Positions 40,093-50,258 are shown, counted from the whole stretch's first letter. The stretch is DNA of 63,364 nt, filler included, from Guillardia theta CCMP2712 (GCF_000315625.1; 6 parts of 6 records of this genome joined end to end with filler, not necessarily neighbours in it); one strand, 5' to 3'. Notes: generated by a model from the letters alone, not told the origin. A program made the numbers and translations.

Positions 40093-40119
40093 CATTCCAT
40101 TGGGTTCTCAACTGGATTT
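40093..40119 (+). repeat. Left terminal inverted repeat CATTCCATTGGGTTCTCAACTGGATTT
   Basis: Reverse complement of 50232-50258 (26/27). Confidence 0.95.
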
Positions 40120-41164
40120 TATTCCGTCTCGGCGGGGTCTTTTTCTACCTGGATTTTTCTTAATGAATAGGTTTTGGATTTCAAAGTGAAAATTTTCCTT
40201 GAAATGTTTTACTTCTGTCAAACCACGCCATTTCAAATTGTGGGATCCTGCCAGCACCGTGCCATTTCTGGAATTTTTAAACGTTGTACAGAATGTACCA
40301 ATGTTGTACACTGTGTTAGTTTGGGAGACTCACGTTCAAGCAGATCGCGCCCTGTGGGCACCATGTTGTGAGATACATACATCAATGTGATGACAAGAAC
40401 ATCTTTTGATGCCAAATTTGACCAGATTTGAATGTATCATGTGGGAAAACGACTGCATTTCCTTTAAGCAGAGTGTTTTGAGGATGATGCATATCATGTT
40501 GCAATAAGAATTTTGTGGAAAGGAAATATTTGAATCTCAGTTCGTTGAGTTGCGTGTAAATGCAAATATGCTTTGAAGCATTGTGAGCATAGTTGTAACT
40601 GTGCATTGACTTGTAATAGTGTAAGGTATGCATTCAAATTTGCATGCTCACGCTATCCAATAATTGTGTGACTTTCCTTGTCATACTTGCACTGAAACAC
40701 CTCAATTCTGATGTGCCAAAGCCCTGATCAGCTGTTTTCACACTTTCAGAAGGGAAACATGAAAGGAATCGATCAGAGAGGCAACCTTCGAAGACATAAA
40801 GGAAATGCGATTCTCCTTATTGCGATGACGGCCTAGCTTCCTGTACCAGAATGCTTCGTCGGTTGTATATGAAACATATTTCAAGAGACTTGCTGGTGCT
40901 TTGCCATGATTGCATTTTTTGAGGCTTCTCCCAATGCATTCCACAACAGTTTGAGTCTTGTGAAATGCTCTCAACAGCCAGTGGGATGGCGATTATAACA
41001 TGTCATTGGAGTTTGTGAGGCACTGAGAGGGAGGAGAGAGGAGGGGACAGGGGAGGTGGGAAGGAGATGGGAGAGTAGGGGTTGGAAGGGAAAGAGAAGC
41101 CTGGGAGGTCACTGCGATGATATGCTGATCGCGAGAGACTGGGAGATGCCAGAGGAGAGACGGT

Positions 41165-43153
41165 TTACTCAAGACCACTAGCGAGGAAGGGATGCTTCAG
41201 AGCCTCCTCTGCAGTCATCCTCGTGCGGGGATCGATGTCGAGGCAGCGGTTGAGGAAGTCCCAGATCGCATGTTTCTCCTCCACCTCCAGCCAGCCCTTG
41301 CATCCCGCATCCTCGCTCAGGGCGCTTGATAAGGTCCGCCATGTTTGCTCCAAACCGCGGGCATAGCTCAGATACTGTTCCAATGGTCCGAACTGAATGA
41401 CATGAAGTTAGCATCCCCAGCTTAAGAGTCCCGCCACCATATCACCCTCATCCTCATCCTCATCCTCATCCTCATCCTCATCCTCATCCTCATCCTCATG
41501 ATACAACAACAGCAGCAACAACGACAACAATTTTACTTCAACGTCGAGCTTGAAATCTTCGATGACATCTCTGATCTTATCCCTGTACTGACCCGTATAC
41601 CCATAGTTGTGCTGGAACTCAGCGTCCATGCTCTTGATGTACATGCGCAAGCTGTTCAGACCATACAGTCAGACCAGCGCACTTACTTCAAGGCTTACAC
41701 AACGGGCGTACCCGTAGATCTCCATGACCGCCAAGTTGTCATTGTCATGCCGGAACCACTGGAAGCAGTGTGTCTGCCGGCACAGCAGGGTAAGCAGTAT
41801 CACCCCAGCGCTCCAGACGTCCACTGCTGTCGTCTGGTGGTGGCTGCCCATGAGCACTTCGGGCGCGCGGTACCCCCGGGTTCCCCCGCGGTTGACTGGA
41901 AGCCGTTTCAGTTTGACCCCTGAGTTCCTCACGGTCTCCGATGCGTTCGTCCTTCTGACGCCCAACCTTCGCCTCTTTGCAATCTGCTGCGCCAGGTTCT
42001 CAGAGGGCAAGATGTAGCCGTTGCTCTTCGTGGCAGGGAAATACTTGCTCATTGACCCTGACGTTGTTCTGCGGCCTGGTGAAGGCGTTTGTCCTGTGGA
42101 AATTCCCAGAGCAGTCTTCTGCATTTTCTTCTCTGCCAGCCCAAAGTCCACAAGCAAGTACTTCTTGTTCCTTCTGTCGTAGAGGAAGTTATTCAATTTC
42201 ACGTCTCGATGTATGATCCCGAGGGCATGTACAGACCTCATTGCTACAAACAAATTCTTCATGTAGTGGGTAATCTCTTTGATGGTCAAATCTTTGACGT
42301 AATCTGAGGGACTGTCATGTTCGAAGTATTCAAAAATCAAAGCCTGCTGCTCCTCGACAATGATTATCCCATTGGGCGCCAGTGGCGGACTTTGCACACG
42401 CTGTACAATGTTGGATTTTCCATGCAAGCTTGATATAAAGTTTGCTTCCTTCTTATGCGCATCCATAGTTTGAAATGGTAATAATCGTTTGATTGCTACT
42501 CGGCGATCATTTAACCTGTCGTAGGCCTCATAGACCTCCCCGAAAGTCCCCGAGCCAACCATTCTTGTTAAATCAAACTGCTTTTCTACTTCATTGAGAA
42601 ACCGCATGTCCACTGGGTAGATCATCAGCTCTTCTCGTATTGAAATTTTCTTGTGTGCAGCCTCTTGATACACAATGTTATCAGCACTCCGACTTCTGCG
42701 CTTGCGGTTTCGCAGAGTTTCCATACTTGCCGATCGTTCTTCCTCTGTTTCGCGGGCCCTCTGCCTCCTCTCCGATTGTCTCCTTCGTTGGCTTGCTAAC
42801 TGCGCAGATCGTTCTTCCTCTGTTTCGCGGGCCCTCCTCTCCGATTCTCTCATTCGTTGGCTTGCTAACCGCGCAGATCGTTCTTCCTCTGTTTCGCGGG
42901 CCCTCCTCTCCGATTCTCTCATTCGTTGGCTTGCTAACCGCGCAGATCGTTCTTCCTCTGTTTCGCGGGCCCTCCTCTCCGATTGTCTCCTTCGTTGGCT
43001 TGCTAACCGCGCAGATCGTTCTTCCTCTGTTTCCCGTTCCCTCCTCTCCCGTTTTCTTCTTCGATTGACCTCCAACTGCGCAGATCGTTCTTCGTCTGTT
43101 TTCTGCCAATGCATTGTTTTGTTGGGATAAGCAGAACATACACCCCCTGGCAA
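41165..43153 (-). CDS. CDC7: Cdc7 (DDK catalytic subunit)-like Ser/Thr kinase with N-terminal 23-aa STPR-like repeats; spliced 3' exons
   Basis: GSGTFGEVY, VAIK, HRDVKLNNFL, LVDFGLA, a long insert, then RGGTRGYRAPEVL..HQTTAVDVWSAGVILL (Cdc7-type). Further exons at ~41540-41652 and 41165-~41374 end RCLDIDPRTRMTAEEALKHPF. Confidence 0.85.
42720..43105 (-). repeat. 69-bp coding tandem repeat (~5.5 x ETEEERSARLASQRxRxSERRAR)
   Basis: GATCGTTCTTCCTCTGTTTC recurs mostly at 69-bp spacing. The 23-residue period and ETxExRxxRL consensus fit STPR repeats. Confidence 0.9.
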
Positions 43154-43182
43154 ATTTCAAAGTGCTCCCAAATATTTGGGAT

Positions 43183-47937: not shown

Positions 47938-48330
47938 CAAATTTGAAATTATGCCCAAATATTTCGGATATGTCAAATCAGATCCTTACATTTTGTAATC
48001 AGACGCAATGGGTCGGGCACGCATGTCGCGCCAACGATGATGTTTTCCTGGGGTTGCAATACGCATAAGCTCACGATCAGCTGCGTTGAGAGGCATCGAG
48101 ACCAGAAGAAATGGAGATAGAATGTCCTCCATTGAAAACATTGACTTTCAAGATGTACCACCTTCCATTTTGCATGAACCCCTGATCTTGGAGATTCAAA
48201 GTTCCCTCCTATCTCAACCTCAGAGTTCGATTGAAGCTCGATGGACAAATAGCACCCTGGGCTTACGGGTTCTTTTAACTCCTGGTTGTGGAATCCGCTA
48301 TCATGAAGATGATCCTGCAAGAACCACAAG
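47938..48330. repeat. Internal direct duplication of 43151-43560 within the transposon
   Basis: 48073-48330 is essentially identical to 43302-43560, and 47938-48013 is a diverged copy of 43151-43226. Confidence 0.9.
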
Positions 48331-50231
48331 GATGAGGTTGTTGTAAGTGTGTTTCTGCTTGGCAATCAATAGCAACGCTTAGCAGATGTGATTGTTTACA
48401 CATCCTCATTGTCATTCCTGTTGTGATCAGTAGAGTTTCGATTATCTTTGGTGAAAATGCAAACCTTGTTGCCAACATGATTCATTCAGGATCCTCACAT
48501 CATTCTATTTGTTTGCATCTCCTTCTTTTGAAAAGTGTATCTCAGAGTGTTATTGTCTACTGTGACATCCTCCCGAAGTTTCTCCTGTCCTTTGCGTGCT
48601 TTATGTTCTGTGAACTGCTACTACCAGGACAGTGCTGCTTCAAAGCTGTTGTATACAAGGGACCACAGTAACCACCATCATGGTGAAGCATCTTTTATTT
48701 GTTGGCAAATAAACAATCTTCAGAAACTGTTGTTATGCAGATTCAAGTTTGCATGACTGATACAGCTTCTGCCTACTCTATATATCGCTTGATCCCTGGT
48801 ATCACAGCCTAGATGTCAAACATGCAATACTATCTCGGAGTGTGCAAGACATTTTCCTGAATTTGCATGGTTGGAGCAATTGCGAGAAAGGATTTGCAGA
48901 GAGAATAAGATGGCATTTGCACGGGTTGTCATGAAAGATGCTTCATCAACATCATTGGCAATGCCGCAGTAACACGATAATACGATTCACAGCCGTGATT
49001 TTCAGTGTGGAAAGCAATCTCATATCGACACGTCTGAAACAAGCATCTGATACAAACGATTATCTTCTTAAAACTCTGAATATCGCCAACCATATCATGT
49101 ACCTGCCATTGTCCAATCAGCACATCTAAAGTGTCCTTGATGCAACTCACTGGCCATATAGGGTTGTGCCACGAATGATACCGTAGGCCATGAGACAGAG
49201 AGAAACACAAGGTGGACACTATTTCGTATGATGTTTTTGCTTACAATCACAGTTTCGAAATACATGCTGAGATCGGCTGTTGCTATGCCATCTTCTGTCC
49301 ATTCTGAAATTACACTTGAACATTTTCAATCAATCGTCATTGTGCAAGAATTTGAATTATTTGCTCAACTTTGACATCATCTTCAGCCCAAGCTAAGTGA
49401 TCTAAGTGGTTTTAGTGCAATTTGAGGCAGCGTGGTAATGAAAGAGATGTTGCATTGGCTTTATGTTGAGGATGAGATGTTGAGTTCAAATCCCTTTCTA
49501 CTTCTTGAATTTCACAGAAGAGACCAAGTCATCACAAATAGACAGGTAACCGTATCTTCTTTTCCTGCATATCCATGCATGGTAGGATTCGAAGTCTCAC
49601 ATTGTTCATTATCGTCCTCACGCGCGTCAATGGGACAATCTCACCATCTCTTGTTCGTCGAGGGAGGGGGGGGCTGGAGTGGAGACAAATGGGGGGACCC
49701 CCTACCCATCATTTTCCCATTTGAAATTGAGAGACTGGGGGGTAGAGGGTGAACCTTGGTCAAATTCGAACCGTAAAACTCGCAACGCTCGAGAGTGTGA
49801 CCCACCCTACGCGACAACGAGGTTTGGAATGGAAATAATGGGGTCAAAGGCGTGGCGATTCAAACCCACATCAGCCACCCCACTCGAGTACAAGACTCTA
49901 GCTCAGGTGGGTGCTGTTTGACCACGCGTTCGAATCCTAACGGTAATCGAAGAGATTGCTTTTCAGCGTCAATTCCACTACCAGAATGCCCAAGACTTTT
50001 ATGATTCTCGCCCACTCCTGAAATCAGACTACCTACCCTGACATGATCTCTTGTAAAACATACCGGTGGTGTAGAGGTGATAGTCGAGGGAGCACTGCCA
50101 GCCCACGGGAATTGCTGACATTGACAGTACAAACTTAGTACGGAGGGGGAAAGGGGATCCTGATACAAAAATCCTTGAACCCGGTAAAACTCAATTATAC
50201 CTCGGTACAAACAGGCTAGCCTGGTACAAAC

Positions 50232-50258
50232 AAATCCAGTCGAGAACCCAATGGAATG
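50232..50258 (-). repeat. Right terminal inverted repeat AAATCCAGTCGAGAACCCAATGGAATG
   Basis: Reverse complement of 40093-40119. Confidence 0.95.

Follow-up and report, generated by a model that had tools for sequence, protein, structure and literature searches.

What is the block of low GC content that interrupts a satellite array at positions 40093-50258 of the Guillardia theta CCMP2712 sequence analyzed here, and which of its genes belong to it? The whole stretch (the window) comprises 63,364 nucleotides, filler included, and joins parts of six records of this genome that are not necessarily neighbours in it. A first-pass annotation made from the sequence alone had read the block as a large transposon of an undescribed family close to Transib, RAG and Chapaev, which brings along its own S-phase kinase and a BAH-like chromatin reader. 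From the analysis described below we consider it probable that the segment represents a DNA transposon of G. theta, autonomous and of the cut-and-paste type, that belongs to a cryptophyte lineage of the CACTA, Mirage, Chapaev and Transib (CMCT) clade, that it was enlarged by two internal insertions and that its kinase gene was captured.

The block measures 10,166 bp from one terminal inverted repeat (TIR) to the other and lies inside a GC-rich satellite piece (38631-50888). Its GC content is 38-52%, against 61-64% in the flanking satellite, and the TIRs are placed exactly at the drop. The left TIR (40093-40119, plus strand, 5'-CATTCCATTGGGTTCTCAACTGGATTT) and the right TIR (50232-50258, minus strand) are 27 nt each and complementary at 26 of 27 positions, which agrees with the segment drawn by the first-pass annotation. 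Four units of a 332-bp satellite precede the left TIR (38760-40092; TRF period 332 with 99% matches, repeat families D1-D3) and the same 332-bp unit resumes in phase after the right one (50259-50858). The spacing of the satellite units across the element is 10498, that is 332 + 10166, and exact phase is therefore kept. As the inserted length equals the length from TIR to TIR, the window copy has no target-site duplication (TSD), as had been annotated. A TSD of 1-3 bp that the run of G at the insertion point might conceal was considered and rejected, since the flanks contribute 1 + 4 = 5 G, as found in intact satellite units.

Inside the TIRs, both ends carry sequences in common with a compact relative found at another locus, L001. 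The first 6 nt of the left TIR and a CTGGAWTTT block are common to the TIR of the L001 element, and the left subterminal region (40093-40215, plus strand) is homologous to its left end (tblastx, 40105-40167 against L001 13744-13682), the blocks GGGGTCTTTTTC and GAAATGTTTT being readable in both sequences. Adjoining the right TIR, three copies of TTTGTAC are found on a single strand (50127-50230, minus strand); they represent three of the five matches to this motif in the whole window, where 1.2 are expected, and a motif of the same type is also repeated at the corresponding end of the L001 element (L001 8655-8800). A scan of the JGI metagenome contigs with the first 17 nt of the TIR returned 55 loci, none of which had any further likeness to the element, indicating chance matches.

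The element contains an assembly gap of 100 N (47234-47333) and could thus be an artefact in which unrelated contigs were joined; the 25 nt adjoining the gap are not supported elsewhere and the two assemblies of the locus differ in their flanks. The window is the other assembly of the locus present in GenBank JH993271.1 (hereafter L002), to which it is 98-99.7% identical. L002 is continuous across the gap of the window, with a single open reading frame (ORF) of 550 codons (L002 3109-4761), which shows that the true missing stretch is about 25 nt, not 100, and that the frame is kept; reciprocally, the window is continuous across the gap that L002 itself contains. Contigs of three public sequencing runs also pass position 47208, with the letters of L002 and not those of window 47209-47233, a 25-nt stretch with an in-frame TAG that is unsupported by other data. 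Because L002 and the three runs bridge the gap, it breaks neither the element nor the reading frame. The TIRs moreover match at both ends and the satellite is in phase across them. A unit created by misjoined contigs is thus extremely unlikely. At least two haplotypes or strains of the element exist at one locus. Fixed single-base differences separate the window from the GenBank assembly and from runs X2 and X4 (at 44946, 45103, 45489, 45774, 46181 and other positions), and run X1 matches the window at most of these sites.

The largest gene of the element (44511-47383, minus strand) encodes a DDE transposase of about 900 amino acids. Exon 1 runs from an ATG at about 47383 through the gap to 45666 and exon 2 covers 44511-45608; the intron between them (45609-45665) is 57 nt long with GT..AG borders, and its removal joins the minus-strand ORFs 45657-47192 and 44511-45587. 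This intron is absent from a 3.5-kb contig of run X1, an unlabelled library guessed to be RNA, and is retained in a contig of run X2, guessed to be DNA. The transposase gene is transcribed and spliced. The ORF is 100% identical to GUITHDRAFT_149260 (P0001) of G. theta CCMP2712. An exhaustive HMMER search identified 13 relatives; all those labelled with an organism come from G. theta or Hanusia phi, and the remainder are metagenome, JGI or Logan sequences. Invariant throughout the family alignment (A1) are a putative catalytic triad of RNase-H type, D343, D477 and E783 (codons at 46106-46104, 45704-45702 and 44729-44727, respectively), as well as C496-x2-C499, C613/H616 and H752-x5-H758; the CxxC and H-x5-H motifs resemble the zinc motifs of RAG1. 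The spliced contig and the invariant columns, together with the predicted fold described below, bear out the earlier annotation of a spliced DDE transposase.

Sequence comparison does not connect this protein to a known family. Neither the ORFs of the window nor three further family members gave a Pfam family for the transposase, and five family members had no match to a RAG1 family even at E values up to 1; searches of the PDB sequences with phmmer and with a family-profile hmmsearch gave no RAG1 or Transib match, and an ESM Atlas feature search with a piece of the transposase gave no usable match. We therefore turn to the AlphaFold (AF2) model built on the family alignment, which has a predicted local distance difference test (pLDDT) score of 67 overall and of 80-94 in the core. 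With Foldseek against the PDB, ranks 1-49 are all RAG1, HzTransib or BbRAGL, the best E value being 3.3e-9. The VIA-align Z scores are 16.9 for RAG1, 16.2 for BbRAGL, 15.8 for HzTransib, 11.3 for the P element and 5.7 for Hermes. Residues 244-816 of the model align on RAG1 463-995, and E783 lies 32 residues from the aligned end, compared to 33 for E962 of RAG1. A fold search of the ESM Atlas returned RAG1 clusters and an equally good cluster of plant CACTA proteins (Transposase_21/DUF4218), with a template-modelling (TM) score of about 0.48.

How far does this fold place the element? CACTA, Mirage, Chapaev, Transib and several fungal lineages have in common a C(2)C motif, an H(3-4)H motif, CA..TG ends and TSDs of 2-5 bp, and some CMCT lineages were recognised only through HHpred matches to RAG1 (Kojima 2025, PMC12730594). 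The fold therefore assigns the transposase to CMCT and not specifically to Transib. The element agrees with the clade in its CA...TG termini, in the short TSD of its siblings (3 bp), partly in its motifs, where C(2)C follows the second D and two His residues precede the E, and in its structural likeness to RAG1, as described for ESTA. It departs from it by the lack of a Pfam match, by ends that read CATTC and not CAC, by a His spacing of 5, by the absence of a TSD at the window copy, and by a conserved BAH-like partner gene and a cryptophyte host. Compared with the CMC definition, which requires 5'-CAC...GTG-3' termini (PMC4079192), the element has CAT...ATG, so that the CA..TG part alone is common, and for a CMC TSD of 2-4 bp the family offers 3 bp in the CATTCTGGGG subfamily, where empty sites are available, none at the window and at most GT in L001. 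The likeness to CACTA (En/Spm, with TNPD and a TNPA that binds subterminal repeats) lies in the two-protein organization, the short subterminal repeats, the 3-bp TSD of the siblings and the match of the plant Transposase_21 cluster to the transposase fold (TM 0.48); in contrast to CACTA, there is no Transposase_21, DUF4218 or DUF4216 match, the accessory protein is unrelated, and the two genes are convergent and are not alternative splice products. On its modelled fold and motifs, the transposase thus appears to represent an undescribed cryptophyte lineage of the CMCT clade and not Transib proper. We found no paper on Transib or CMC elements in Guillardia, nor on a BAH partner of such a transposase, which agrees with the undescribed family proposed by the first-pass annotation; the term is provisional, Repbase being outside the comparison.

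The element could alternatively be a true Transib member or a RAG-like (RAGL) transposon, as known from the alga Aureococcus. The element reported from this pelagophyte (PMC9435367) has a genuine RAG2L and 5-bp TSDs, so that algae as such were already known to harbour transposons of the RAG1 fold. The best solved structures are indeed those of HzTransib (6pqx), mouse RAG1 (6oet) and BbRAGL (6b40), with Z scores of 15.8-16.9; about 420 residues align, extending over the pre-RNase-H, RNase-H, ZnC2/ZnH2 and C-terminal modules and including an invariant DDE triad, and the second gene lies tail-to-tail with the transposase gene as in the RAG1-RAG2 and RAG1L-RAG2L pairs. The TSD is however 0 or 3 bp and not 5, the ends read CATTCC or CATTCTGGGG with nothing like a CAC heptamer or a nonamer, pairwise identity of the transposases is only 10-14% with blank hidden Markov model searches, the CACTA cluster matches the fold equally well, and the partner, of mixed alpha/beta type and with a small barrel, is unlike the Kelch/PHD protein RAG2 and its propeller. 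We consider this assignment very unlikely. Of the Transib/RAG/Chapaev neighbourhood that had been proposed, the RAG1/Transib fold stands; it is not specific to Transib, and the siblings have TSDs of 3 bp, a length also found in CACTA and Chapaev. The CAT rather than CAC ends and a partner other than RAG2 had been correctly annotated.

This partner, ORF-X (43351-44499, plus strand), ends at 44499, and the transposase gene ends at 44511 on the opposite strand, the two genes being convergent. In the GenBank version (L002 5923-7197) ORF-X is intact, with 363 codons from a likely ATG that corresponds to window 43351. Homologues with 21-48% identity lie tail-to-tail with a transposase gene at L001, L003, L004, L006, L008 and L009. 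The pairing is thus found in all seven loci examined, window included, which makes ORF-X a core gene of the family and not the cargo that the first-pass annotation took it for. No Pfam family, BAH (PF01426) and Kelch included, matched ORF-X and its homologues (five members). The ORF-X model is of mixed alpha/beta type with a pLDDT of 44 (51-79 for residues 36-141). All 50 top Foldseek matches are BAH domains, with E values from 2e-3 to 0.1, and VIA-wide, which is independent of Foldseek, also ranks BAH domains first: AIPP3 (Z 8.0 over 97 aligned residues), EBS (Z 7.9 over 98), Rsc2 (Z 7.8 over 83) and ORC1 (Z 7.2 over 103), with Tudor, PWWP and KOW barrels at Z 6-7.4. The structural matches are confined to residues 30-149 and concern BAH/Tudor-type barrels; none assigns the C-terminal 220 residues. 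We conclude with moderate confidence that the N-terminus of ORF-X is a predicted BAH-like or related 'royal-family' barrel; the annotated ORF is therefore real and conserved, and its BAH likeness is weak. Matches of ORF-X to bacterial DUFs in the ESM Atlas feature search were all sub-threshold and were disregarded. A complex prediction with the transposase core (residues 240-816) and ORF-X scored 0.00, with an uncertain ORF-X fold, and speaks neither for nor against binding.

The related loci show the family in more compact form and, in one case, in movement. The L001 element (8655-13757) has 29-nt TIRs starting with CATTCCGTTCC and carries the left subterminal blocks and TTGTAC repeats of the window copy. 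At L004, an element at 9275-14207 has 24-nt TIRs starting with CATTCTGGGG and GTG on both flanks. The same type of ends is found at L003 on a non-autonomous element of 2,104 bp (16504-18607) with perfect 25-nt TIRs (CATTCTGGGGTCAAACCGCGGTAGT). This element is flanked by GCT on both sides and the same locus contains two paralogous empty sites that read ...GGCGGCTGGTCAG..., which is direct evidence of recent transposition with a 3-bp TSD. The empty sites are located at about 5830 and 14260 of L003; an 86-nt piece of the L003 element also matches L002 13299-13386. Finally, positions 1-2463 of the metagenome contig L011 match the right arm of the window (47828-50258) at 92% (blastn) and end with the identical 27 nt of the right TIR, which borders a different GC-rich flank. 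This match beside a different flank indicates that the long right arm is present at a second site in another genome.

These loci also bear on the possibility that the transposase and ORF-X have been domesticated in the manner of RAG1 and RAG2, with fossil TIRs and an immobile locus. The low copy number, the expression of the genes and the presence of homologues in the Hanusia phi transcriptome are compatible with domestication, as are the diverged paralogue pairs (22-57% identity), which keep long open frames and the invariant catalytic residues. However, each G. theta paralogue pair examined still lies between its own matched inverted ends, the L003 relative with its perfect TIRs, its 3-bp TSD and two empty sites moved recently, and the right end is found at a different site in L011. 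Domestication is accordingly unlikely, and the reading as an autonomous transposon is the one that we retain.

The third gene of the element lies in its left half and encodes a protein kinase. The segment that contains it (40748-43153, minus strand; gene at about 41165-43153) has an ORF of 494 codons that matches Pfam Pkinase (1.2e-34) and whose best PDB matches are human CDC7 (1e-32) and yeast Cdc7 (7e-31), ahead of CK2 (1e-21). Residues 190-342 and 419-474 align, and the roughly 75 residues that separate them form a long insert between DFG and APE, as in the Cdc7 family; the catalytic motifs GSGTFG, VAIK, HRD, DFG and APE are all readable. The N-terminus contains 5.3 copies of a 69-bp unit (42732-43101, minus strand; TRF), each of 23 residues. 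These repeats match the STPR domain of FMBP-1 (5d23) with an E value of 6.6e-5, in register over four repeats and with a high composition bias (18.9 bits); they had no match in Pfam. The annotated Cdc7-type kinase fused to STPR-like repeats is thereby confirmed. The first kinase intron (41652-41711) is spliced in X1 and not in the X2 contig, and a fully spliced product, P0024, is 99% identical. The kinase is transcribed and spliced and, judged from its sequence, looks catalytically intact.

Several observations indicate where this gene came from. Window 40748-42660 matches L005, the locus of GUITHDRAFT_116856, with 82-89% DNA identity that extends into the 3' flank and with no transposase nearby, and the metagenome contig L067 contains an STPR-kinase relative without element sequence upstream. 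Since such paralogues lie outside elements, the fusion of kinase and STPR repeats predates the capture. The kinase is absent from the TIR-bounded elements of L001 and L004 and from the partial metagenome contig L007 (left end only), in all of which ORF-X directly follows the left end, and from the gene lists of L003, L006, L008 and L009. The window and L001 are colinear over about 125 bp from the left end and then again from about 43160 onward. No second copy with a kinase between TIRs was found. An exon piece that encodes the catalytic loop (42119-42214; 95 nt) has 4-5 times the word depth of its neighbours in the X2 contigs, which indicates that the kinase family is multi-copy. About 30 raw RNA reads (X19), which are uninformative on strand or level, derive mostly from a paralogous kinase exon; nearly all of those at the kinase exon share three differences and have foreign ends, as expected for expressed paralogues.

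An alternative, which develops the first-pass view that the element brings its own S-phase kinase and chromatin reader, is that the kinase and the BAH-like protein act as functional cargo that couples transposition to S phase and to chromatin; the kinase would bind the DNA of the element and phosphorylate replication or transposition factors. The intact motifs, the transcription and splicing of the gene and an STPR array of DNA-binding type are in keeping with such a role. The long right arm is also present at a second site in another genome, and the X2 word depth is about 107-230 over unique kinase pieces vs 218 for the transposase, although depth is not copy number. The role is contradicted by the absence of the kinase from the sibling elements and gene lists, by the paralogues outside elements and by the lack of a second TIR-bounded copy, all of which fit a one-off capture, an outcome that the first-pass annotation had itself named as refuting its reading, and we regard it as distinctly unlikely. 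Most likely, a single lineage of the element captured an STPR-Cdc7-like gene of the host at the DNA level, as the sequence comparison suggests, and the kinase is most likely a passenger. CACTA elements tend to capture fragments of host genes, and Pack-MULEs and CACTA transduplication are known forms of gene capture by DNA transposons in plants. The window copy resembles these by the presence of a host gene copy with introns and flank between transposon ends, and differs from them in that the element is autonomous and its kinase gene whole, apparently functional and expressed, whereas in those cases non-autonomous elements carry gene fragments.

The right arm contains the second excess of sequence. 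It includes a partial duplicate of ORF-X, made up of its first 80 codons and the sequence upstream of them (47938-48331, plus strand; repeat families D5, 100% over 259 nt, and D8, 89%), followed by a block without a recognised gene that is 92% conserved in L011 (48332-50126). Scans for tRNA and Rfam families found nothing above threshold.

Taken together, the family core of about 5 kb consists of CATTC...GAATG inverted ends, subterminal repeats and the convergent genes for the transposase (about 900 amino acids) and ORF-X (about 360 amino acids). The transposase would cut at the CA...TG ends, where a hairpin is the probable intermediate, as it is for RAG1 and Transib. ORF-X may be a second subunit or a targeting factor whose BAH/Tudor-like barrel may read nucleosomes; equally, it could act like the TNPA of CACTA on the subterminal TTTGTAC repeats. 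In the window copy, an insertion of 2.9 kb, located some 125 bp from the left end, brought in the host kinase gene with its introns and 3' flank, and a 2.1-kb insertion in the right arm starts with the partial ORF-X duplicate. The large size taken by the first-pass annotation as a property of the family thus results from two insertions into a compact element. A more far-reaching view is that of an undescribed cryptophyte RAG1-fold lineage of superfamily rank with an obligatory chromatin-reader subunit that steers integration, for instance into satellite heterochromatin, as an independent counterpart of RAG1 with the PHD-bearing RAG2, and with one branch in which a DNA-binding Cdc7-like kinase times or licenses transposition; to this we give little credence.

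Several points weigh against the reading as an autonomous CMCT transposon. The full 10-kb form is known from a single genomic copy, and its mobility as a unit is therefore only putative. Within the CATTCC subfamily, the window copy has no TSD at all and that of L001 no more than 2 bp (GT). The flanks also differ between the two assemblies (L002 1-101 and 10160-10260 against window 40073-40119 and 50232-50300): in L002 the right TIR is joined directly to the left flank of the window in reverse-complement orientation, GGAATG being followed by CGGCCAATCTCC, and the left TIR abuts 8 nt of the right flank of the window before the sequence folds back into satellite. Either the part between the TIRs has been inverted in situ, or one of the two assemblies contains an error here. 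The ORF-X of the window is interrupted by a palindromic insert of 57 bp with an in-frame TGA (43627-43683), which is absent from the GenBank assembly and at which the Logan contigs break on both sides, so that neither source confirms it. The BAH assignment derives from a model with a pLDDT of 44, and Z scores of about 8 are commonly reached. The transposase, finally, has no sequence-level link to a named superfamily; its placement in CMCT comes from the fold of a model with a pLDDT of 67, the motifs and the termini, and its H...H spacing is 5 and not 3-4.

Some further features were observed at these loci. In the window, a perfect 36-bp tandem duplication and the palindrome (43601-43683) make up the 57-bp insert of ORF-X; the palindrome resembles Rfam mir-44 below threshold (31.5 bits vs a gathering score of 54) and was taken as a chance match. 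The L001 element is enclosed by inverted copies of a long segment (up to 1,334 nt, 97%) at 4736-8239 and 16946-18279, which carry other protein-kinase genes with no tblastx match (E up to 1e-5) to the kinase of the window. The transposase/ORF-X pair of L003 is located in a complex region with an inverted duplication of about 670 nt (5830-6310 and 16005-16503) and with 76-bp-spaced CATTCAGCTTCC repeats on both sides of the pair (8732, 8808 and 19220-19372). A fragment of a piggyBac-type transposase (PF13843, DDE_Tnp_1_7) is present at L004 20111-20601, 6 kb from the L004 element.

The interest of the family lies in its partner gene and in its possible current activity, and the idea of the kinase as cargo is not supported. 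The captured kinase, intact and expressed, illustrates clearly how an autonomous DNA transposon of a protist can take up a complete gene, though on present evidence it is an anecdote and not a system. With a sibling that has empty sites and with genes that are expressed and spliced, the element may still be active. RAG1-fold transposases are at the root of V(D)J recombination, and most of what is known of their clade comes from animals, plants and fungi; a lineage in cryptophytes, detected only by structure, broadens the range of these enzymes. The family offers a second, independent RAG1-like enzyme together with a putative chromatin-binding partner that is unlike RAG2, and this pairing bears on how and why RAG1-like transposases gain a second subunit.

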